From Trichosphaerium sp. ATCC 40318 (taxonomy: Eukaryota; Protista; Tubulinea), in contig JALMLS010000589.1 of the NCBI GenBank assembly GCA_038496445.1, positions 62,001-126,000 of the forward strand: 64,000 nt of DNA. Reading direction: 5' to 3'. Shown here one piece after another: positions 2,549 to 47,453 of this stretch. The position numbers and the translations under genes were made by a program. Every line of letters starts with the position of its first letter. The stretch's first letter is position 1. The notes beneath the pieces are model-generated. The model was not told where the DNA came from and searched no databases. It was given only the letters and a program-made list of their open reading frames with translations.

Positions 2549-4563
2549 TTATTTATTGACATTTATAACTTTGCCCGTTTTGTGGTTTTTCATTGTGTAT
2601 GGAAATATCCAGGCTGGTCTTACTATGACTAACACAACAAGGATGATGATGACAATCAATAAAATGACAGCTGTAATTCCACCAATTAAGTATTTAGTTG
2701 TTGTGCTTATTCCTGATGACTCGCTGGCATTGCATTCATTGTCATCAACAATCAAAAACAAAGCACTTGTTTCTAAGTATGAGTAAGAACAATGTTGAAA
2801 GCAGTAACATGCTACCTTGTTTGACATTGCCATTACGACATCCGTCAATCTCAATATTGGGAACAGAATCTACTTTGCAGTTGGTTTCATCGTAGTTGAC
2901 AAGTGTTGAGCTTTTCGGAAGCTCTGCTGCTTCATCTACAATCATATTGGCGTCTTAAACAGAATACTTTAGCGTAAATAATACATATCAGCCTTACCTT
3001 CAATCTCAATACATCCTTTGACATCGAAAGTTACAGTACCATTAGTCATAATCGTACTTCCATTTGTCCAAATCAAATCACCTTTAACATATTAGAATGA
3101 TGCATACTCATACATTGTGGTACCTAGAATTAGGATGACTCCGCTTTTTAATATCAACAAAGGCGGTACTACATAGTCTCCAAGTACTGTCCACGTGCCA
3201 TTCACACATTCTTGTTCCTCAATTAATTTGTCTCCTATTTCACAAATAGAATCTTCGTCTGCGAGGAGCAGTCCGGATCCAGAGTTGTACCAAAGTTTTC
3301 CATTAGGTCCAAATTCAGCGAATTGAACACCTGATTGATTTTGATGGCTAAATACAATGTTTCCTGACTTAGTGAGAAAACAAAAAAAAACCACTGTGGT
3401 GGAAAATAATACGTGTACCTTGTAAGTCTATGGCAAGTACTTCTTTATCCGCTGCAGCTGCTATAAGACCCGTTTGTTTATTGTATCTTATCCTTTGAAC
3501 TTTTTTTGGTTCATATTGTTTTTTGAAGAAAACAGAGTTTTGTGTAGGGTTACCTACAGATGGTTTATTAGCTCATTTTCTTGACGATTTAAAGATAGAT
3601 TCTTAGCTAAACGTACGAACATCATATTTATAAATCTCATGTCCATTACTTACAAGCAACTCATACTCTGAAATGAAGGTACATCCCTTTATCAAGTAAC
3701 AAATGAGATTCAATTCGAAAATATGATAGGGAAGACCAACAACTTACTTGTGCTCCAACGGCGTCCCAGTTACTTCGGGTTATATTATAAGCATGCTGAT
3801 ATAAATTGGTTGATTCTCTTTTTTGATAAATGAAAGGTCCAAGAGGATGTTGTCTAACGATTCCAACAGCCAAATAAGTGCCGCTTGGGTTAAATTCAAG
3901 GTGTCTGAAAAGGTGACTTGGAAGATAATCTGGTAACTCTATTTCATCAACATATTTTATAGATGGCCACTCAAACATCACCTTATTATACCCATTAGAA
4001 AAGAACCAGGATGATAGACGCTGGTTTTGAACACGTGATATTAAACAAAAATAAGGAAAAAAACCAGAAAATACTTACGATTGTTTTTGTGGATGAAGCA
4101 CTAGCGTAGAGTATATTTCCATTGATTGCCAAACCTTTTTGTAATAACCGCAGACATTAGGTTATAAATACTCGGTTTAGATCCCGTACCTTGAGGTTGA
4201 GTTGGGGCAAACTTTCCATTATTCTGCCACGTCTCTATTTCGAAACCAGGTATTAAACAACCTATTTGTTGGATACTGTTTAGTAACAACTTGTACAATA
4301 TGACGCACACCTGTTGCATTCATTGCTATAATTTTGCCCGCGTTGTCGTCTGTTGTAACAGCCAAAAGAGCAGTATTGTCATCTATCCATAGCATATCTT
4401 GTACAATAAACCCATCTTCGACAACATTACCACAATTCGCTTTTAGAAAAAGAGTCAGTGTCCGCAAGTATCGGATTATGGCGTTTATCGCGTGATTTAG
4501 ATGCCCTGAAGCATTGTGCGCCACTGTAACAACGCAAACAAAACCGCTAAAACTGTTTTTTCA
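2549..4563 (-). CDS. Type I membrane surface protein, tandem copy 2
   Basis: Same exon chain as copy 1, ending RPAWIFPYTMKNHKTGKVINVNK*. The putative signal peptide needs one extra A in a homopolymer near 4556-4561, so the start is uncertain. Confidence 0.75.
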
Positions 4564-16427: not shown

Positions 16428-17013
16428 AGGGCAACATGACCATCTGATCCTCAGCTAAAGTTTTAATAAATGGATATTACAATAGATATCGGTTATGTTG
16501 AGTTATACTTAAAGCCTACTGCAGCCAAATACAGTACCTGGGACTCGGCGAAATCCGGTGTTCTGCTACACTTGCTATCCTAACTAGTGAACAAAAACTA
16601 AAACATTTTTTTGATTGTGCAAAGTTTTGGACATTCAGTATCCCTCCGCTACATCTATCACTTGTAGTGTAAACAGTACCTTTGTTTGTGAGTAGTTTTG
16701 GCGTTTCAGCACCAATGTTACTTACCACTTCCCATAGACACATTTGCGTGTAAAGACACCTTTTTTGATGACGTACCAATGACATAGAAAAAAGAATTAT
16801 TCACTGAACTTTCACGCGAAATGTATCCATAGTCACACATAGTGGGAACTCAAATATTGAACAGCGTGTTAGCTGTATTTACAGTATATCGCCATAGCGT
16901 CTAGGGTAACTAAATTGTTTTGTAGACTTAACTACCATAAGCGCTAGCGCCATTTGTTGAGCTTGTCCTTAGGAATACCACTACTCGTGAGTTGTCATCT
17001 GTTTTCTCAGAAG

Positions 17014-17517
17014 ATGAATATTTCAGAATCTTGCAGTATTTTTGACCTTCCTGTTGAGATACACCTCGATATTATTGACTTAGACTTTGATGTATATTTA
17101 AAATGGCCTATCTTATCTAAACAATTGGCAATGATATCAAGATTTGATTCCGATATGAACAAGCACTATAAGTGGCAGAAAAGAAAGAAAAAAAGTAGAA
17201 AAGTGAATTGTACAGCGTACTGGAACCATGGAAAAAAACATGGTAATTGCAAGTACTGGCATGATAACGGGGAACTAAATGAGCAATGTGATTATGTTGA
17301 CAGTAAAAAAGACGGAGAATATAAGCGTTGGTACAGGAGTGGTCAGATACAAGCTCACTGCTTTTATGTAAAAGGTAAACTTCATGGAGAATACAAGTAT
17401 TGGTATGATGATGGTATGTTGTATGAGCACTGCAATTATATACATGGCATCCGAAAAGGTAAATGCAAACGTTGGAATCCAAAGAAACAAGCATTCAAGG
17501 AGTACAACTACGCTTGA
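17014..17517 (+). CDS. Intronless F-box protein with MORN-variant repeats
   Basis: IFDLPVEIHLDII, then GKKHGNCKYWHDNG, KKDGEYKRWYRSG and GKLHGEYKYWYDDG. Confidence 0.8.
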   Translation: MNISESCSIFDLPVEIHLDIIDLDFDVYLKWPILSKQLAMISRFDSDMNKHYKWQKRKKKSRKVNCTAYWNHGKKHGNCKYWHDNGELNEQCDYVDSKKDGEYKRWYRSGQIQAHCFYVKGKLHGEYKYWYDDGMLYEHCNYIHGIRKGKCKRWNPKKQAFKEYNYA

Positions 17518-17900: not shown

Positions 17901-20071
17901 TTATTCATTGTCCACACGCACAATTCTTTTACGAAGTCCAGATCCTGCTCCAGGCTCATTTGGCTTCTCAGTGGTAGATGGTTTCATAATTGGTTCCTCA
18001 ACTTCTGTCGAAGGATTACCATTCTTTGCAACTTCTTCTTTTTCTCTTTCTTCCTTTTCATCCTCTTCTTCTGTTGTCAACTCTGAAGCACATTGTACAG
18101 CATCAAGAGGTTCTTCTCTATGTTTAAGAAGATACTCTTGTATATGTGCCATAGAAAGATTATCTACAAGTTTCTCACTAAACTCCTTTGCATACGCTCT
18201 AGCTTTAGCATCTTTTGTGTTTATATCAGAATAATAAAAATGCAAAAACAGATTGTATGACTGTTCTCTTGAAGCATTTCCAAAATAAAGACGTCTATCA
18301 GCTCTTCCAGGTCTAATAAGAGCAGGATCTAAAAACAAAGTATAAGAATAAAGAACGAAAGAGAAAAACAAGAACATTCAAAGAAAAAGAAGAAGAAAAG
18401 AACATACCAAGAACTTCCTTATGATTTGTTGTCATGAAAAGAATTCTACCATCTTGCGTCTGTACGCCATCGAGTGAATTCAACAACCCACTAAAGGTAA
18501 CGCCAGTATCATTACTGAAACGTCCACCCATACGACGAGACAATTGCACATCAGGTGTTGGTGGTACTGCTGCTACAGGTTCTTTCTTTTTACCAAAAGC
18601 AGCATCAATATCTTCAAGTAGCAGAAAACAGCTACAAAACACGTGTTAAAAACAACAGCACTTGACATGTAAATATGAAACGTACTCTTCAGGCATAGTC
18701 TGAAATAATTGCATCAAATTTGAGTCATTTAGACCAGGATTAGACAAACTCAACATACAAATATTGTAATTAAGTTCACCGGCTATTGCTTGAACAAAAG
18801 ATGTTTTACCATTTCCAGGTGGTCCGTAGAGTAAGTATCCTAGCAAGCAGTTAATACACCACTCCAGACATCCTCAAAGAAACAAACAAATGGGACGTAC
18901 CTCTTCTGTGGTTCAAGCCACGGTCTTGATACCATTTGGCAAGAGATTTGAATGTTTTAATTTCATTCAATAGTTCATCACCTCGTTGGCGATCAAGGAT
19001 AACTGATTTGAAAGGACGCTTTGGTTTCATAGCTGACCTTTGCCAATAAGCTCTTCCTTGAACCACAGCAGTGTAAATGATAGTCTAGGGTCAAAAAATT
19101 AGACGAGAGAACGAAGTGTTGAGATAACAAAAATAGTTTTAATAAAATGTCAGATGACATTTTGTTTAGCGGAGTATTATCTACTGCAATATGTAAAATC
19201 GTTTCTTACCTTTTCAGAATCCAACTGAGCTGTAAGATCACGTGCGTTATATACAATCTTCTTCAAAAACTCAATATCACGACCATATGTCGATATTTTT
19301 ATAATCTCATTATTCGCTTGTGGTATACCCATAACAGCTGCATTTTGTTGCTCTAAAACATATATATAAGCACACATACAAACAATTTAAAACGACAACT
19401 ACGTATTTGGACAAAAAGCTGTTTCTGTGTGGCACAGTAACCAAAAACAAAAAAAACACTAGAAAGCTCTGAAACGTACTTTGATTTTGTCCACGGTATA
19501 TCCAGCACATGCGACCTTTAACCCACGTGACGTGGTAGCCAACAGCCGGTAGGAAGTATACCTTAGTGTCTGTTGTCTTCTTTTTAACAGCAGAATTGCC
19601 ATAATGGCGTACTACTTGCGTGTGGTTTGGTTTTCTGGCGAAAGCGCTCAAATGGCGTGAAGTTGCTTTTGATTGGCGTTCTGATAGCCACATCATCATC
19701 CATGTGTATCTATTGCGAGTTTAGATGACGTTTGGGTAAATAACACGTAGAAATATTAAAATGTCCCGTTTTTGGTATTAGAGGGTTAAATAGAGCGTTT
19801 GGGGTTTAAACCGGGATGTCGATTTGTTTTTAGAACAAACGTTTAGTTTTTTTTTGCTAACAGTAGTAATGCAAAGGTTTACGTACGCTCCATCAGTTGC
19901 TTTGACTTCTACGCTCACAATGAACGCTTTTTGAAATTCTGACCACAAATAACGACAGATACTATAGAATAGTGCTACACCGGAACTAAGGAGTCCTAAA
20001 ACGATGGCCCCGACAAAGAAGTCGTTTTGCCCTAATGAAGAGCCGAGTTTCTGCGTAATGAGCCTCTGCAT
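17901..20071 (-). CDS. BCS1: BCS1-family mitochondrial AAA ATPase
   Basis: [71 protein letters not shown]. Confidence 0.93.
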
Positions 20072-24842: not shown

Positions 24843-25770
24843 AAAAAATTCAGTGCTGCCAGTTCTTACACCATATATCAGCCGATCGATATTCAATATT
24901 TCTTTGTATCCAAATAATAAAAGAATAGGAGAAATCAGCGGTTAAAATATCACTAGGGTTTGGTGTCCAAGACACCTTTTTAAACTCATTTATTAGACTG
25001 CTTTATGCACACAAAGCTGTAACATTATTTACTGACATTTATCCACAAGTCAGGCTTTTAATCCCTTGTCTTAATTCAATTGCATTGACTACCCATGGAG
25101 TCGATAACAAAGCACAAGGACATAGTGCAAGACTTTCACTGCATCATAATTCGGTTATCACTTGACATCTCAAAATACTCGTAGGTTTTTGTAGTAGACA
25201 AACTGACCACAAAAATTATTGTGGTTTACGTAGGCGGTTTAGTAGCTATGACATCTTGTTGTAACAGTAGGCGTCCAGAGTCATGTAGAAGGCTAAGTTT
25301 GGCTTATCGTTCTTTAACAAACAAGTTTTGTCAACGCCAGATTTTGAGGTACTAATCAAAAAAGTTGCGTTTTGAGCCAAGATGTATTCAATCAAAGGTG
25401 ACCAAAAAAGTTGTCTTACTTATCGGTGATGGCAGCAATAACGCCAATCATACCTTTTTCGAAGTTAATACGGTTGCAATGTTTTTCGATGTTCCTTGAC
25501 ACGTTCCGGACGGACACGCTTACTGAAATAAAACATAATGATATTGCTCCATTTTAACCAACTACAGAGGATCTCAAAATTTCTTCCGTTTACTGAAGCG
25601 CAAGGCACATAGAATGCGAAAATAATCCAAAAGAAGGAACGTTCGAATAGATGAAAGGAAACGATAGTTACATTGTTAAAATAATTTCTTCCAAGTGAAA
25701 AAAAGCTGAAACTTTTGTGAAATTTCACTTCTTTTTCACAACAATATAAATTGTGTATTTGTAAGGCACA

Positions 25771-27396
25771 ATGGCAGCATCAGAAATACGTTTAGGAGTT
25801 GATATGGGCGGAACGAAATTACTGTTACTGGTAGATGATAACTATGAGTCTAAAACACACAGAGTACCAACTGGACCTGATTTCACGCCAGAAACGCTCG
25901 TTTCGACTCTTACACAATTTTTAAACTCTGTCTATCCTCATGAGTGGTCTGTCACAAGCTGTGGCGTTGCTGTTTGTGGTCTTACAGATTCAGAAGGTAT
26001 TTTAAAACATACGCAACGTTGCTTGCTTTTAAACTGTTTATAAACGTATTGTAGGCGTAATTAAACTGTGTGAGCTACCTAGAATGACAAACTACAATAT
26101 CAAAACAGGCCTTCAAAAAGTTTTGTCATCAAACGACGTTTACATCATAAACGACGCAGATGCAGCTTTAAAGAAGGTCCACAACGACTATAAAAAAGCA
26201 GGAAAGCCATGTGATAACATAGGGGTGTTTGTTTGTGGAACCGGCATCGGTACAAAGACTCTTTCTTGTCACATTCTTTTTTTTTTTTTTCATTTTTCTG
26301 ATACCACCTAAATCATTGCGATCAAACTCAACTCTCTGTAGGAGCTGCTCACTATGTAAACGGAATGCCACTTCAAGGTACAAACGAAATGTAATGGCCA
26401 GTAGAAGTGATGTTCAACGATAGGACCTTTCCTTCTTGGTATTGGATCATGTCCAATTATGATAACAGATTCAGATAGAACAGTATCAACACAAACAGCT
26501 GACGCTTTGGGTGGTGCGACTTTCTATGGTGTCTTAGTAATGAAAGATTAATGTTTTTCTACAGGTGGGCGTCATATAATTGCAGAACTCTCTCCTATAA
26601 CTCCACAAGAAGCAATAAAGCTTTTGAAAGGCCTTGAAGATAGAAATCTTCTTGAAAGTAAAGATAACAAAGGGCTATCTCCTGACGAAGTTAAATGTCG
26701 TGATGTAATACAAAAAGCTGGTTATGCATTAGGTGTTGCACTGGCTATCATATTGGGTATGCTTAACCCTACATCCATGGTATTAGCAGGTGGTGTTTTT
26801 AATTTTCCAGGGATAAAGGTGAGAACTAAACGATAGCAAGAATGTTGTTTTGACTAGTTGTTAAGGATGCTGTGCTTAAAAGTGCGGCTTTACAACATAA
26901 AGAAATGTGCCCTGAAACTTTCACAAATTGCGAGATCGTAGAGAGTTTACAACGGAACGAACTTGTAGCAGCAGGCGCACTTCTTCATGGTGTTTCCAAG
27001 AGAAGAAAAAAGTTATCAGACTGCCTTAAACTTCTTGCTGAGATACAAAATCACAAGGACGCATGGCCATTTAATGCCCCTGTGGACCCTATAGCACTAC
27101 TCATACCAGATTACTTTGCTATAATCAAGAATCCCATGGACTTACGCACTATTAAGGTGGGCACAATTTCGAAGTTGTTTTTTTTTTTGTACGTGGTTAA
27201 CATTTTTTGTTATAATCAGTCCAATATTGAGAATGGAGTCTATAGAGATGCTAAGGAATTTCACGATCATGTTATGCTTGTGTGGGAAAATGCTTGTACA
27301 TACAACATGCCAGGTTCAGGGATACATAATATGGCAACAGAGCTTCGCGTTTTTTACATACAAAAATGGGATAAGCTTGAAAGCGATTGGGCATAA
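25771..27396 (+). CDS. ROK-family sugar kinase fused to a C-terminal bromodomain
   Basis: ROK motifs GVDMGGTK, INDADAA, GTGIG, LNPTSMVLAGGV. Bromodomain motifs AWPFNAPVD, PDYFAIIKNPMDL, VWENACTYN. Six GT-AG introns. Confidence 0.88.
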
Positions 27397-28542
27397 TAAA
27401 CAATAAAAAAGTTTCAAACCTTATTTTGTAACATGATGGCAATAATCCCGTTCTTTTCACTTGAAGTATTACACATGGTTAAGAATCATATTTGTCGCAA
27501 AACGCTGAGTAGTGGTTAAAGGTAAGTGCTCAGAAAGGTCGAACTTTTTTTTTATCACTAGTTCTTCTTACCTTATAGCCTTACGTTGTTATTGAATCCC
27601 AATGAGCACCTGAATGTTTACGGAAATTAATTTTCGTTATCGTACCAAGTCACATTGAAAGAACCCCAAAAAAAGAAAAAAGTTGGAAAAGAAAGTTGTG
27701 GGTTTATGACGGAAATAATAAATATCCTTTGTTATTAATCTACGAGCACCTTTAGTAATCCTTACGCCTGTTCGGTTATGTGCGCAAAGAAAAACTTTCG
27801 AGACAAAGCGGTACAATACCAATTTGAGCGAGTTTTATCGGGTTTTATTAACTCCAAACTATACAGTCTCATTTCACCGTAAAAATGTTACGAAGACTAC
27901 CACGACAATAGTCCAGCCTTGTACGAAATGAATCTTGGGGTTTCTCAGCTTCAGATTTTTCGTAGATAGTTCAAAACAGCAAAGGTAAAGAAGCCCAACT
28001 GAAAGACAAGTTCGCTAAAACAGACACAGCGGTTTTGCTGAATTACGAGTGGCTTAACATCCATAGTTATGTCAGCTTAGAATTCTGGCACACTGCTCCT
28101 AATAGCACCTAAAGCAAGCAAAGAATAAGGTAAGCAACGTCATGATAGTTTCATGTCATTTGAAGCACCTTCAAACGCACGTGAAGATAACTTTTCCTAA
28201 AAAACTTCAACCAATACCTGTTGCCCACCTTGCATTACATAGGATTTTAACACTGTTTAAAAGTTTCACGCATGGACACGTAAAAATGGACAAGGAAGCG
28301 CAAAAAGCCTGGGATTTGACATGAAATAACCATTTTGAGTTATCGCCTGATTTTTCCGGATATTTTGTAGACCTTGTGCAACTCTGCACCATCCTTACGG
28401 ATTAATTTACGTGAGCATAAGATCAGAAACTCACGTGTGCTACAAATCGGAGACCTTTAAAAGTAGGCTTAGCGTTAAGTAAGATTGCGTTATTCAATCC
28501 TAGCGCTTCAGCCATAAAAACATTGAAGGACAACTGGTATGT

Positions 28543-31320
28543 TTATTTATTTACACCTCTTACTGAAAATTGTGTTTCTACAAGATTCAAATAGGCAGGC
28601 GTTGATGTGAGCAACTCCTAGTAACAATGTTAATTCTTATTTCATTGAGAGACTTACTTGATGTGTTCCTTTTCCTATCACTTGTCCGTCCTCTAGAACG
28701 ACTATTTGATCTGCATGAATTACAGTTGAAAGCCTAAAAAAATGGTTAGGTACATATTATATGTTATGTTAGAAACACGTGAGATGTACCGGTGTGCAAT
28801 TATTACTTGAGTTACGGTATGATGGAGTTGTTGTATTGAGTCTTGAATAGCCTTTTCAGAGATACTATCAAGAGAACTTGTGCTTTCATCAAGTATAAGT
28901 AAGGAAGGATTTAGTACTAAAGCTCTAGCAATAGCAACGCGCTGTCTTTGTCCACCTTGTCAAGATAATGAGCGAAGAAGATACGCGTATGCCAAACAAA
29001 AAAAAACCAAAAAGAAAGTGAACCTGATAACTTAATACCACGTTCTCCAATTAACGCTTGGTATCCTTTAGGCGCTTTTATTATAAAATCATGAGCATTA
29101 GCACTGCGATTCAGAAAGGAGGTTAGTAGCTGAGAAACCAATGTGGGCAAAGAACTGTCAAGAAAAAAATACCGTTTTGCTGCTGTAATGATTTCTTCCA
29201 TAGTTGCTTCCGGTTTTCCGTATGAAATATTGTCTGCGATAGATCTATCAAATAGACTGCTATCTTGCATCACAATAGAAACCTTTCGTCTCAGAGATTC
29301 TCTTTTGGCTCCTTTTAGATTAATTCCGTCCCATAGGATGGATCCTTCTTGAGGATCATAAAAGCGGAGCAAGAGATTGGCCAGAGTAGTCTTCCCAGAA
29401 CCAGAATGGCCTAAGTAGTAGTTGTTAGTAAGAAATACCACCAAAGGATGTTCTTTATGCTTGACACATGCGAAGTTGAGAACAAGTGTCAGCTGGTAAA
29501 ACAACTTTTTTTGTATAATTTTTTGTTATATATAAGCAACGTACCAACAAGAGCTGTTGTTGTTCCTGCTTTGATCGAAAATGAAATCTAGGATGTTTAT
29601 TGTTTGTTATTTACCCTTAGTTGTGTTTATACGTACACGTTTGATAGCTGGAGTAGCACCTTTTATTTTATTGTAAGTGAAAGAAACATCTCTAAGTTCT
29701 ATTTCTTTGTTTAAATCTGGAAGATCTTTTGCGTTTTTTGCATCCTTGAGCGTGTCCTCTGTGGCAATTATATTGTATAAATGTATTACCTTACTAATAC
29801 TATTCATCATTCTACTGTAACCACCAGCAAACTTATCTAAGAAGATCCAGCCAGTAAGCAAAAAAAAAACCTTCAAAAAGCAAAGACAATTATCAAAACA
29901 CAAACACATGCGGATAAATCACATTTAAACGACTTTTTTACAAGTTTTGGTCAAATAGTACATACTCAAAGGAAATAAAGTCAAATCTTGATATCTTATC
30001 AATAACAACAAGGTACCAACAGTCATAGTTCCATTGTTTATCTGCGATACACCGTAAAGTATTACAGCAGCTTTAGTAGCTGCCTCTACTAGTTTCTGAT
30101 ACCCATTTCTATAGTACATTAAAGCATCTTCTTTGTATCTAGTTGTATGATAACCATGCCATCGTTGAACAAAACGAAATACTTCAGCAATACCTAGAGG
30201 AAAAAAAAGATGAGAAAAAACCAAGATAAAAAATGGCTGTGGATGTTTGTACCTCTTCCGAATGATTTAACAGATCTAATATTAGATACACCATCATATA
30301 GTGTTTGATTAGCTCCCGCATAATAATGGTGTTGGAGGGTGTGAAGCTTTTTCCGAGCACCATACCAATAGTATCCGAAAAAAAAGTTAACGGATATTGT
30401 TGGTACGAAAAGCCACCAAGGGGCTATCATAATCGCCGAGTACAAGGCCATAAGGAAAGGTAATAAGTCCAGTAGTAAGTATTGACCGTATATTTCGTGT
30501 ATTAGAACCCAGATATTAGCTGCGCCTTTCTCGATTTTAGCACCGATTTCACCTAAAATTTGGTTAGCTTCACAGCGTTCTGTGGTTTTTCTCTTATTTT
30601 TAAAGCCTGAAATCTCTTAGTACCTGCATTGGTGTTATCGTGCCAATCAACAGGTAGGTTGTAAAAACACTTTAGCCCACAATAACGCCAAGAATCATCA
30701 ACTTGAGTTGCCATATACATTTTTAAGCTATCACATAACATTACGTTTAACCTTCTTAACATTACAACAACAAACCAATACCCAATAAACCACTAAAAGA
30801 AAAACACTATCAGAATAAACCTTCTCAACTACAAAGTGACTAAAAACGTAATGTCCACAGTGAGTGGTCAAGAGAAGAAGCGCAATTTGAAGATTTTTAA
30901 GTACTTTTAAAAAAGGGAAGAGAAAGTTGCCACGTGCGTACCTTCATCTTTGGAGATGTTGGGTCTTTTAAAATAAGATCAATGATATTTGTCAATAATA
31001 AAGGCATGGCAACACAAAGAAGAGAGTACGTTACACTAAAAATAACACAACAGGCAAGTAATCTTGCATCTGATCCCAACCTAGAAAAGTTGTCAACATT
31101 TATTTGGTCTTTGGCTAAAAACTAGGCTACGCCGAACACGGTCTATTCATGAAAACCCATAGTACCAAGCTGTCATTGAGACGCTTTTGATAACTTTGAA
31201 TTCTGGGCTATCTGTTGATTTGCATGTCTGCTTAACAACCCTCTCAACTATTTCAGCGTTCTTTAGAGTTCGCGGTTTATCTTGTACAAACGAAAGAAGA
31301 GGTGTTGCTTCGTCTGTCAT
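28543..31320 (-). CDS. ABCB-type half transporter (TMD-NBD)
   Basis: Walker [11 protein letters not shown]-loop VMQD, signature [26 protein letters not shown], and N-terminal TM exons. Confidence 0.93.
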
Positions 31321-38047: not shown

Positions 38048-39437
38048 ATGGACACGAAAAACAACGGCAATGGATACTTTAATTGGTTGTACAATATGTT
38101 AGTTGTACGAAACGCCGTAAAACAACTCAATTTCGCTCACATAGTAAAAAACAGGCTCCTTTTACGAGTATTAGCGGATTTATACGGTATTTGACTACAG
38201 GCATTTTATACGCTCAAAATAGTCGTATTTTAGCTAAACCAGGTACGCTTTAACGCTTAAAAGGCGTTAAACGGTCTTCAATGTTCACAAATTGTTTTAT
38301 CCCTAAAACTTGTTTCAAAGGTAAGCCACTGGCCGAAACTCTACCTAGCGAGATTCAAGAGTACATTTGCTCGTTTTCACCGGACGCGTTTACAAAATGG
38401 CACACGCTATCAAAAAAGACGGCTACTGCAACGCATTACGATAAGAATATGCAACAGCGAGGTAAATGGCTTCGTTGGCATAAAGGTGGCGCTCATGTGC
38501 AAAGAGAGTATATTCGTTTACCAAACGGACATCAATCTGTACGAGGCTGGTATTCTAATGGCGTACGTGGTTTTTCGAATATTTATTTATTTGCAAAGAG
38601 TGAGTTCACTGAGTTTTCAATTGGACACGTGTCACAGTTTTCGAAACCAAACATGTGTTGATTCTGGAAGTACTTCTTTGTTAACAAATTTCTCCTTAAA
38701 ACCGTTAACACAAGAGCTTATCAGCAGACATACTTTGGATTGGTTTCAAGTGTTGCTAGAGTGTTGTTTGTTCGCAACTCTTTTGATGTCTTTTTGAAAG
38801 TGTTTCATCACGTGATTCTTTACGTATAATTTTTGTTTGACTTTGATTTAAGGCTTTGGAGCTCAAGTACATAAAAGTAAGTTCTACAACAGCGCACGGA
38901 AAGCTTGAAAAGTGGCATAAAAACGGTCAGTTACAGATTGAAGAGTATTATAACTATGGTGTACCAACAGGAACAAGTACAGAGTTTTATGACAATGGTA
39001 AAAAGAAAACAGAAAAAAGTTTTGATAGTAATGGTAAAGAACATGGTTTAACAAAACACTGGTTTGAGAATGGTCAATTAAAATTCACTATGACTATATC
39101 ACATGGTGCTATTCAAGGCGAACATAAGACTTGGTATGAAAATGGTCAGTTAGCTCAACATTTCTACTTTGAACGTAACCTTCTTAATGGACCTTGTAAA
39201 TCATGGTTTGATAATGGTCAAGAGATGTTTGTGGGTACATATTTTGATGGAAAACAACATGGAGAATATGAGGAATGGCATCGAAATGGAAGAGTTAGAA
39301 TGGTTGCTGTACATGATCATGGAAAGCCTCTACCAGGGTATAGAGTATTTAATGAATACGGCCAGCAAATTCCTAATTATAAGCTACTTGATGAGAAGCT
39401 GAATAATGGGGAAGTGGCACCTACAAGCCCGTTTTAA
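38048..39437 (+). CDS. Intron-containing F-box protein with MORN-variant repeats
   Basis: LPSEIQEYICSF and repeated HG..(W/F).NGQ units. The 5' exons are approximate. Confidence 0.75.
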
Positions 39438-45947: not shown

Positions 45948-47453
45948 ATGCGTTCCGCTTCAAAGGGTTGTAAAATCGACAATAATACTTGCGAGAGTTT
46001 GCTTCAGCTTCCTACAGAGATATTAGCACATATCTTGTGTCAAACAACCAAATCACGATTTGCAGCTTGTCAAACCTGTCGTTTTATTGCTTCTATCATT
46101 CATGATATTATTGGATACCACGCTATTAGACTTACAACGTTAACTCAATCAAAATCAGCCGTAAAACATCCTGGTATTGTGAAATGCACAAAAGTTGCCC
46201 TTAGCGGACACGTTTTTGATGACAATGTTATCAAACAATTTGCTGGTGTTCATACTATTTATCTTAATGATGACACTTCAGTAACTGATGAAGGCGTTAA
46301 AGCACTTGCTGGTGTCCATACTATTAATCTTGATGACACTTCAGTAACTGATGAAGGCGTCAAAGCACTTGCTGGTGTCCATACTATTAATCTTGAGGAC
46401 ACTTCAGTAACTGATGAAGGCGTTAAAGCACTTGCTGGCGTCCATACTATTAACCTTTGTAGCACTTCAGTAAATGATGAAGGAGTTAAAGCACTAGCTG
46501 GCGTCCATACTATTAACCTTAGTTACACTTCAGTAACTGATGAAGGCGTCAAAGCACTTGTTGGAGTTCATACTATTCACCTGGATAGCACTTCAGTAAC
46601 TGACGAAGGTGTCAAAGCACTTGTTGGAGTACATAGTATTTACCTTGGTGGCACTTCAGTAACTGATGTAGTAGTTAAAGCACTTGCTAGTGTCCATAAT
46701 ATTGACCTTAGTTACACTTCAGTAACTGATGAAGGAGTTAAAGCACTTGCTGGCGCCAATACTATTAACCTTAGTCGCACTTCAGTAACTGATGAAGGAG
46801 TTAAAGCGCTTGCTAGTGTCCATACTATTGACCTTAGTTACACTTCAGTAACTGATGAAGGAGTTAAAGCACTTACTGGCGCCCATACTATTAACCTTAG
46901 TTACACTTCAGCAACTGATGAAGGAGTCAAAGCACTTGTTGGAGTACATAGTATTGACCTTAGTTACACTTCAGTAACTGATGAAGGAGTTAAAGCACTT
47001 GCTGATGTACATACTATTAACCTTCGTTGCACTTCAGTAACAAATGAAGGCGTTAAAGCACTTGCTGGTGTACATACTATTGACCTTTGTCACACTTCAG
47101 CAACTGATGAAGGCGTTAAAGCACTTGCTGGCGTACATACTATTGACCTTTGTCTCACTTCAGTAACTGATGAAGGTGTTAAAGCACTTGCTGGCGTACA
47201 TACTATTAACCTTCGTTGCACTTCAGTAACAAATGAAGGCGTTAAAGCACTTGCTGGTGTTCATACTATTAATCTTGATCATACTTCAGTAACAAATGAA
47301 GGAGTCAAAGCACTTGCTGGAGTACATACTATTACCCTTAGTCACACTTCAGTAACTAACGAAGTTATTAAAACACTAAAAGGCGTCGAATATATTGAAT
47401 TGCATGGTTTTTTTTTTGTAAAGCAAAATAATAGCGTGGATGCAACAATCTAA
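45948..47453 (+). CDS. Intronless F-box/LRR protein with 18 x 21-aa repeats
   Basis: LLQLPTEILAHIL..ACQTCR F-box, followed by an LAGVHTIxLxxTSVTDEGVKA array. Confidence 0.9.
   Translation: MRSASKGCKIDNNTCESLLQLPTEILAHILCQTTKSRFAACQTCRFIASIIHDIIGYHAIRLTTLTQSKSAVKHPGIVKCTKVALSGHVFDDNVIKQFAGVHTIYLNDDTSVTDEGVKALAGVHTINLDDTSVTDEGVKALAGVHTINLEDTSVTDEGVKALAGVHTINLCSTSVNDEGVKALAGVHTINLSYTSVTDEGVKALVGVHTIHLDSTSVTDEGVKALVGVHSIYLGGTSVTDVVVKALASVHNIDLSYTSVTDEGVKALAGANTINLSRTSVTDEGVKALASVHTIDLSYTSVTDEGVKALTGAHTINLSYTSATDEGVKALVGVHSIDLSYTSVTDEGVKALADVHTINLRCTSVTNEGVKALAGVHTIDLCHTSATDEGVKALAGVHTIDLCLTSVTDEGVKALAGVHTINLRCTSVTNEGVKALAGVHTINLDHTSVTNEGVKALAGVHTITLSHTSVTNEVIKTLKGVEYIELHGFFFVKQNNSVDATI
46240..47375 (+). 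repeat. 63-nt coding tandem repeat (LRR units)
   Basis: Near-invariant cacttcagtaactgatgaagg..aaagcacttgctgg backbone. Confidence 0.95.

Follow-up and report, generated by a model that had tools for sequence, protein, structure and literature searches.

A spliced mRNA of an amoeboid protist joins a ROK-like domain to a bromodomain, a candidate ATP-using module targeted to acetyl-lysine

We describe a gene in which one spliced mRNA joins a ROK-like domain to a bromodomain. It lies in a window of 64,000 nucleotides (the whole stretch of DNA that was analysed; all coordinates below without a contig label are positions within it), and it is an intact, spliced and expressed gene of a microbial eukaryote. 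The product consists of an N-terminal domain of ROK/ASKHA fold (~310 aa) and a single C-terminal bromodomain, connected by a linker of 6-9 residues. Among the matches listed in our searches, the combination of ROK and bromodomain occurs in one lineage only. Judging from the residues that are kept and lost, the protein may be a bromodomain-targeted, ATP-using ROK-like module, acting either as a kinase for a non-canonical acceptor or as a nucleotide switch; this is the reading that we favour, and we give it somewhat less than an even chance.

Metabolism usually acts on chromatin indirectly, through the levels of acetyl-CoA, SAM or NAD. If our reading is true, an ATP/sugar-kinase fold hard-wired to an acetyl-lysine reader would couple the two directly, in a compact and testable form, and a bacterial-type enzyme domain would clearly have been recruited into the chromatin machinery of a eukaryote. 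Should the ROK part instead prove a dead scaffold, the protein would still represent a new eukaryotic pseudo-ROK.

The gene, its transcripts and its two forms

The coding sequence runs from 25771 (ATG) to 27396 (TAA) on the + strand, the limits given in a preliminary description made from the sequence, and comprises 7 exons, 1269 nt and 422 aa in the cDNA-supported model. The locus is AT-rich (~37% G+C), with short spliceosomal introns. Its features are as follows.

25763..27427 (+): mRNA unit with an 8-nt 5' UTR, 7 exons and a ~30-nt 3' UTR; the coverage of X4 record 10
25771..25996 (+): exon 1, aa 1-75, phase-1 end; ATG; phosphate-1 motif DMGGTK at 25801-25818
26055..26249 (+): exon 2; N108-D109-A110 (catalytic) at 26150-26158; GTGI(G) from 26237
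26342..26377 (+): exon 3, 12 codons, ..AAHYVNGMPLQ..
26424..26513 (+): exon 4, 30 codons; degenerate ExGH position G160-S-C-P-I164 (26444-26458), and a cysteine-free stretch in place of the zinc motif, up to D179
26565..26818 (+): exon 5, helical part of the large ROK lobe; adenosine motif A-G258-G259 (26786-26794)
26866..27156 (+): exon 6, the junction exon; ROK C-terminal helix to ~26994; linker SKRRKK at 26995-27012
27220..27396 (+): exon 7, second half of the bromodomain; Y392-N393 at 27301-27306; TAA at 27394-27396
25997-26054, 26250-26341, 26378-26423, 26514-26564, 26819-26865 and 27157-27219 (+): six introns, all GT..AG, from the X3 and X4 contigs

In exon 6 the end of the ROK domain reads ..NELVAAGALLHGV, the SKRRKK linker comes next, and the bromodomain follows from ~27022, with WPF at 27064-27072 and then PVD, PDY and PMDL, reaching as far as ..PMDLRTIK. 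The preliminary description had placed the ROK end, the linker and the start of the bromodomain in this one exon and had argued that the fusion does not depend on a guessed splice. It was right on both counts, and the exon is transcribed as well: the spliced cDNA contigs X3, X4 and X1 span it, and with it the junction region 26700-27300.

For the transcript mapping, contigs from 4 public runs, assembled separately for each run and not from the genome assembly, were aligned to 25000-28000; 5 runs contain part of the locus. X3 record 9 (1300 nt) covers 25753-27409 with zero mismatches against the window and the six introns removed, and X4 record 10 (1329 nt) covers 25763-27427 with joints identical to those of X3. 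Immediately 5' of 25763, X4 record 10 carries a SMART template-switch oligo tail, which marks it as cDNA and places the 5' end of the mRNA at ~25763, leaving about 8 nt ahead of the ATG. X1 record 3, from a 2015 study, covers exons 4-7, junction exon included, while X2, from a 2024 study, contains the exon 1-2 joint and has loose ends that match the spliced neighbours at both borders of exon 6. In all, the spliced fusion mRNA is seen in 3 studies (2015, 2023 and 2024), and the full gene in 2 contigs. Because the contigs were assembled run by run, the three studies cannot share one faulty assembly.

The borders of exon 4 appear as alignment joints (26375>26422 and 26512>26564) in X3, X4 and X1. 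A six-exon model with 26378-26564 as a single intron was also considered and is ruled out by the presence of the exon at 26424-26513 in the cDNA contigs. The mRNA is very compact: AATAAA stands at 27398-27403, 2 nt past the stop, and the contig ends ~30 nt past the stop. Intron 2 contains a run of 13 T at 26277-26289 (region 26269-26302), where reads appear to be cut.

A search with the junction exon as query (97 aa) against 1.84 billion representative proteins returned 3144 bromodomain matches, and among the best 150 of these a single one, P0001, reached the ROK end too. P0001 is an MMETSP transcript fragment, 92% identical to the query. Its 90% cluster includes P0155, a full-length protein of 425 aa from a 1303-nt spliced JGI contig, and the same fusion is present in two independent assemblies. 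The preliminary description had called the architecture unfamiliar, and our searches agree. No second ROK+bromodomain cluster was found among the matches listed in the protein-database searches, ESM Atlas included, the word-indexed ones being insensitive at such divergence; a Pfam scan of ten matches with a C-terminal bromodomain showed no ROK in them; and literature searches on ROK + bromodomain, sugar kinase + bromodomain and Amoebozoa bromodomain architectures turned up nothing relevant.

The gene exists in two expressed forms, each with an intact ORF. Over the ROK part, 5 synonymous and 2 non-synonymous changes separate P0155 from the window form; a further stretch stands out.

27002..27150 (+): divergent patch between the window and the sister form (P0155/P0001, X1)

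This patch holds a 9-nt linker indel (SKRRKK vs SKSPNPGKK) and, besides it, 1 synonymous difference and 7 that alter the amino acid, several of the latter through 2-3 substituted bases within a single codon; the flanks differ almost only synonymously. From this pattern, the patch looks like one left by gene conversion or recombination. The indel also bears on the proposal that SKRRKK is an NLS-like linker: the expressed sister form has SKSPNPGKK instead, so the basic stretch is not a conserved feature. X4 carries a third combination of variants.

An artefact (misassembly, read-through from a neighbouring gene, a bacterial contaminant or a decaying pseudogene) would accord with the fact that the architecture is seen in a single protein cluster among the matches listed. 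We nevertheless consider it all but excluded, given that both domain ends lie within one exon, that there are full-length spliced cDNA contigs, one of them identical to the window, and that the fusion recurs in the independent MMETSP and JGI assemblies. Further, the six spliceosomal introns exclude a bacterial contaminant, and the ORF is intact in two forms whose differences are mostly synonymous.

The two domains and their relatives

Both domains named in the preliminary description are recognised in P0155 above the Pfam cut-offs, ROK (PF00480) with 68.3 bits (cut-off 22.9) and Bromodomain (PF00439) with 70.2 bits (cut-off 21.7), and Pfam reports no other family. On single window exons the ROK model gives 27.3 bits for exon 1 and 16.4 bits for exon 5. 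Exon 5 also gives a NagC-like C-terminal match in NCBIfam, where the C-terminal half does best against the NagC and Mlc models, though far below their cut-offs. Exon-by-exon PDB and NCBIfam searches gave weak ROK matches only. For the ROK-like domain of P0155, the best PDB sequence matches, at 21-30 bits, are 2ap1, the Mlc homologue 1z05 and the human ManNAc kinase.

Four signatures have been described for ROK proteins (PMC5458393): the N-terminal nucleotide-binding motif DxGxT, a strictly conserved catalytic Asp, the sugar-contacting ExGH of ROK kinases, and a zinc motif of the form CxCGxxGCx(E/D). We aligned the ROK-like domain with 59 bacterial ROKs (alignment A5, 60 rows with the query). 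DxGxT is present as D11-M-G-G-T15-K16, and the catalytic Asp as D109, after N108, in a column that is Asp in 59/59 bacterial rows. The motifs DMGGTK, NDA and GTGIG lie at aa 11-16, 108-110 and 137-141. Retained residues are D11, G13, T15, K16, N108, D109, T138, G139, G258 and G259; the majority of their columns do not vary among the bacterial rows, six of them (D11, G13, T15, D109, T138 and G258) being the same in 59/59. The residues aligned to ExGH are S161-C-P163-I164, with Pro in place of a Gly that is invariant in 59/59 bacterial rows. Of the zinc motif only the acidic D179 is left, the stretch from I164 to D179 being free of Cys. The zinc-motif cysteines are likewise missing in 13/59 of the sampled bacterial ROKs. 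In the "LGE" stretch, the conserved Glu is Val in the fusion protein. Translation and alignment therefore bear out the pattern first reported for this domain, namely that DMGGTK, NDA and GTGIG are kept and that GExGH and the Cys-Zn motif are missing.

In the ExGH columns of A5, 25/59 bacterial ROKs have Trp for His, and 25/59 have Ala or Cys for Glu, the latter mainly in a Bacteroidota-containing clade. These substitutions suggest that ExGH is less universal in ROKs than the textbook motif implies.

The predicted structure is a two-lobed ASKHA/ROK fold by AlphaFold, Foldseek and ESM Atlas alike. The AlphaFold model of residues 1-318, computed from alignment A5 (pLDDT 91.9, pTM 0.89), has a sole dip in confidence, at 151-170, the former ExGH/zinc region. 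The best 50 Foldseek matches in the PDB are all ROK kinases or repressors (TM up to 0.77), and ESM Atlas, searched by shape and by features, gives nothing but bacterial ROK clusters, all of them lacking a bromodomain. An N-terminal winged HTH is absent: the Pfam ROK match starts at residue 8, and Pfam reports no HTH family.

Searches of 5.8 billion proteins returned four ROKs only, at 24-32 bits. Relatives were collected by scanning prokaryotic genomes and metagenomes for sequence patterns (the JGI contig that encodes the protein itself is not among the metagenome matches listed), and the nearest among the matches listed are short, zinc-less bacterial ROK-like proteins of ~260-280 aa, with 26-32% identity over the whole domain. 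They comprise five Acidobacteriota proteins (L002-L006/L084) and two proteins from 70%-GC soil contigs (L082/L083). In a 64-row tree, the sample for which contains no eukaryotic ROKs, the fusion ROK domain falls in a clade with nine zinc-less bacterial rows (SH-aLRT 99), although its branch is very long, at 5.63 changes per column, and the clade joins long branches. A bacterial ancestry of the ROK domain is plausible on these grounds; the ROK part would have come from bacteria, and the introns and the bromodomain would have been gained later.

The fusion protein shares with these bacterial proteins the lack of the Cys zinc motif, an Asp for Glu after the former zinc loop, and a PTGPxFTP-type N-terminal stretch. 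It differs in that the bacterial proteins are stand-alone, without introns and without a bromodomain, and in that they keep the Glu of ExGH (TELGY, GELGS) where the fusion protein has S-C-P-I. Since the relatives lack the cysteines yet retain the Glu, zinc was probably lost before the fusion arose, and ExGH would have been lost in the eukaryotic protein only. The clade appears to be uncharacterised. In one of its contigs, the ROK-like gene (L084:1912-2736) sits between a divergent LysR-type regulator (987-1883, -) and an overlapping MFS transporter (2661-3944, +), neighbours that suggest a small uptake/kinase unit; in another, a gene for D-3-phosphoglycerate dehydrogenase precedes the 70%-GC relative at L083:3010-3837.

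The bromodomain is found by Pfam in the window itself (61.7 bits over 26866-27393) and in its single exons (aa 53-97 of exon 6; exon 7 with 32.7 bits). Its best PDB sequence matches are BET bromodomains (BRD4 BD1/BD2 and BRDT). In the alignment with BRD4 BD1/BD2 the elements WPF, PVD, PDY, PMD and YN are in register, exon 7 running against the "YNKPGDD" region (YN-PG), and the acetyl-lysine pocket residues W334-P-F336, Y350 (of PDY), Y392 and N393 align with the "WPF", "PDY" and "YN" of BRD4. The elements listed in the preliminary description (WPF, PVD, the ZA-loop Tyr, PMDL and the Asn after Tyr) are accordingly all in place. The full-length model shows a four-helix bundle (helices 318-331, 363-371, 378-395 and 401-424) with ZA-loop turns, at pLDDT mostly >85. 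The BET family has two tandem bromodomains and an ET domain; the fusion protein has one bromodomain and no PF17035, and is for that reason not a BET protein. The domain is BET-like, with a complete acetyl-lysine pocket, and is a putative reader. The targets of bromodomains are not necessarily histones.

The full-length AlphaFold model, computed from a second, checked alignment (A6), has a pLDDT of 89.5 and a pTM of 0.73; both domains are modelled with confidence, and the linker residues 311-314 lie below 50. The disordered linker and the drop in pTM from 0.89 to 0.73 suggest two domains whose orientation is not fixed, with no reliable contact between them.

Possible functions of the fusion protein

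Under the reading that we favour, the bromodomain would bind acetyl-lysine marks, most probably those of chromatin, and the ROK-like domain thereby docked would perform an ATP-dependent step. This step could be phosphotransfer to an acceptor other than the classically bound hexose; alternatively, ATP binding or hydrolysis could serve as a conformational switch. Every element of the nucleotide site is kept (D11xGGT15K, T138-G139 and G258-G259), as is the catalytic base D109. That these residues persist despite extreme divergence points to continued selection on ATP chemistry, and not on classical sugar sensing. Zinc-less ROK kinases with an intact active-site architecture exist (PMC5458393).

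Among the closest enzymatic comparisons are zinc-less ROK sugar kinases (F. nucleatum NanK, L. monocytogenes Lmo2764/4htl and S. aureus NanK, 6q26/6q27), which share the ROK fold (TM 0.69-0.77) and the combination of DxGxT and the catalytic Asp without a zinc site. S. aureus NanK has this combination. FnNanK keeps DxGxT and the catalytic Asp without a zinc site, and LmNanK lacks the cysteines (PMC5458393). Unlike the fusion protein, which has neither motif, these kinases retain ExGH or ExGY, and they phosphorylate N-acetylmannosamine. Human GNE (UDP-GlcNAc 2-epimerase / ManNAc kinase) likewise combines, in a eukaryote, a ROK-family kinase domain with a further domain, and its kinase domain matches the fusion ROK (2yhw/2yhy/3eo3, 21 bits, TM 0.69-0.72); its partner, however, is a metabolic enzyme and not a chromatin reader, and it keeps ExGH and the zinc site.

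As ExGH is lost, its Gly replaced by Pro, and the Glu still present in the relatives, the ROK-like domain could be catalytically dead. The protein would then be a pseudo-enzyme scaffold in which a non-catalytic ROK domain serves as a dimerisation or interaction module, turning the single bromodomain into a bivalent reader or recruiting partners. The change of ExGH to S-C-P-I, including the otherwise invariant Gly, the missing zinc motif, the branch of 5.63 changes per column and the drop in AlphaFold confidence exactly at the former sugar/zinc region are all in keeping with such a scaffold. Many ROK proteins are dimers, and the structural matches include MecR2 (4ija), a ROK-fold protein with a non-kinase role. 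In FnNanK the large ROK lobe is the dimerisation domain (PMC5458393). We still regard a scaffold as rather unlikely, as the retention of the nucleotide-site residues and the catalytic Asp at ~70% divergence from the nearest relatives listed would scarcely be expected unless ATP chemistry were under selection.

The preliminary description had proposed a eukaryotic analogue of ROK regulators: a sugar-sensing chromatin reader, in which the ROK domain would bind a sugar without phosphorylating it, as in NagC, Mlc and XylR, and exert allosteric control, with the bromodomain in place of the HTH. In part this holds, for the fusion is real and both HMMs pass. Like the regulators Mlc, NagC, XylR and Lmo0178, the protein couples its ROK domain with one that would direct it to the genome, and the structures are similar: the ROK repressors 1z05, 1z6r and 5f7q are close, ROK-regulator clusters in ESM Atlas reach TM 0.79-0.80, the C-terminal half scores best with the NagC and Mlc models (though far below the cut-offs), and the cleft residues N108, D109 and D179 remain. 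What fails is the motif pattern, which is kinase-like and not repressor-like. In regulators DxGxT is usually altered and the zinc motif conserved (PMC3553997); here, in reverse, DxGGT and the catalytic Asp are kept, and the zinc motif and the ExGH sugar contacts are lost. The targeting domain of the regulators is an N-terminal winged HTH, whereas here there is none and the acetyl-lysine reader sits at the C-terminus, attached through a disordered linker and without a confidently predicted contact between the domains (pTM 0.89 to 0.73), so that no allosteric path is obvious. The nearest relatives listed are, moreover, stand-alone ROK-like proteins of ~260-280 aa without an HTH. A sugar-sensing reader is therefore unlikely in our judgement. 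The other option raised in the preliminary description, a kinase tethered to acetylated chromatin, fits the motifs better than a regulator does.

More specifically, the protein might be a chromatin-tethered ATP-using small-molecule kinase or a metabolite-gated reader that links the reading of acetylated chromatin directly to a metabolite, be it an acetamido sugar or some other acceptor that is not a hexose. An amoeboid protist would then have assembled it from a zinc-less ROK domain of bacterial origin and a BET-like bromodomain of its own. We put this forward tentatively, as a possibility that is on balance doubtful.

Other reading frames in the window

Just downstream of the fusion gene, on the opposite strand, an exon-sized ORF at 28917-29504 (-) carries a piece of an ABC-transporter ATPase (62.3 bits), and another exon-sized ORF, at 17901-18377 (-), carries a BCS1-like AAA lid domain (45.1 bits). 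MORN_2 repeat variants are found in ORFs at 16954-17517 (+) and 38856-39437 (+), with 45 and 66.5 bits, respectively. An intronless 501-aa ORF at 45948-47453 (+) combines an F-box with a strong LRR_6 repeat signal (143.7 bits).
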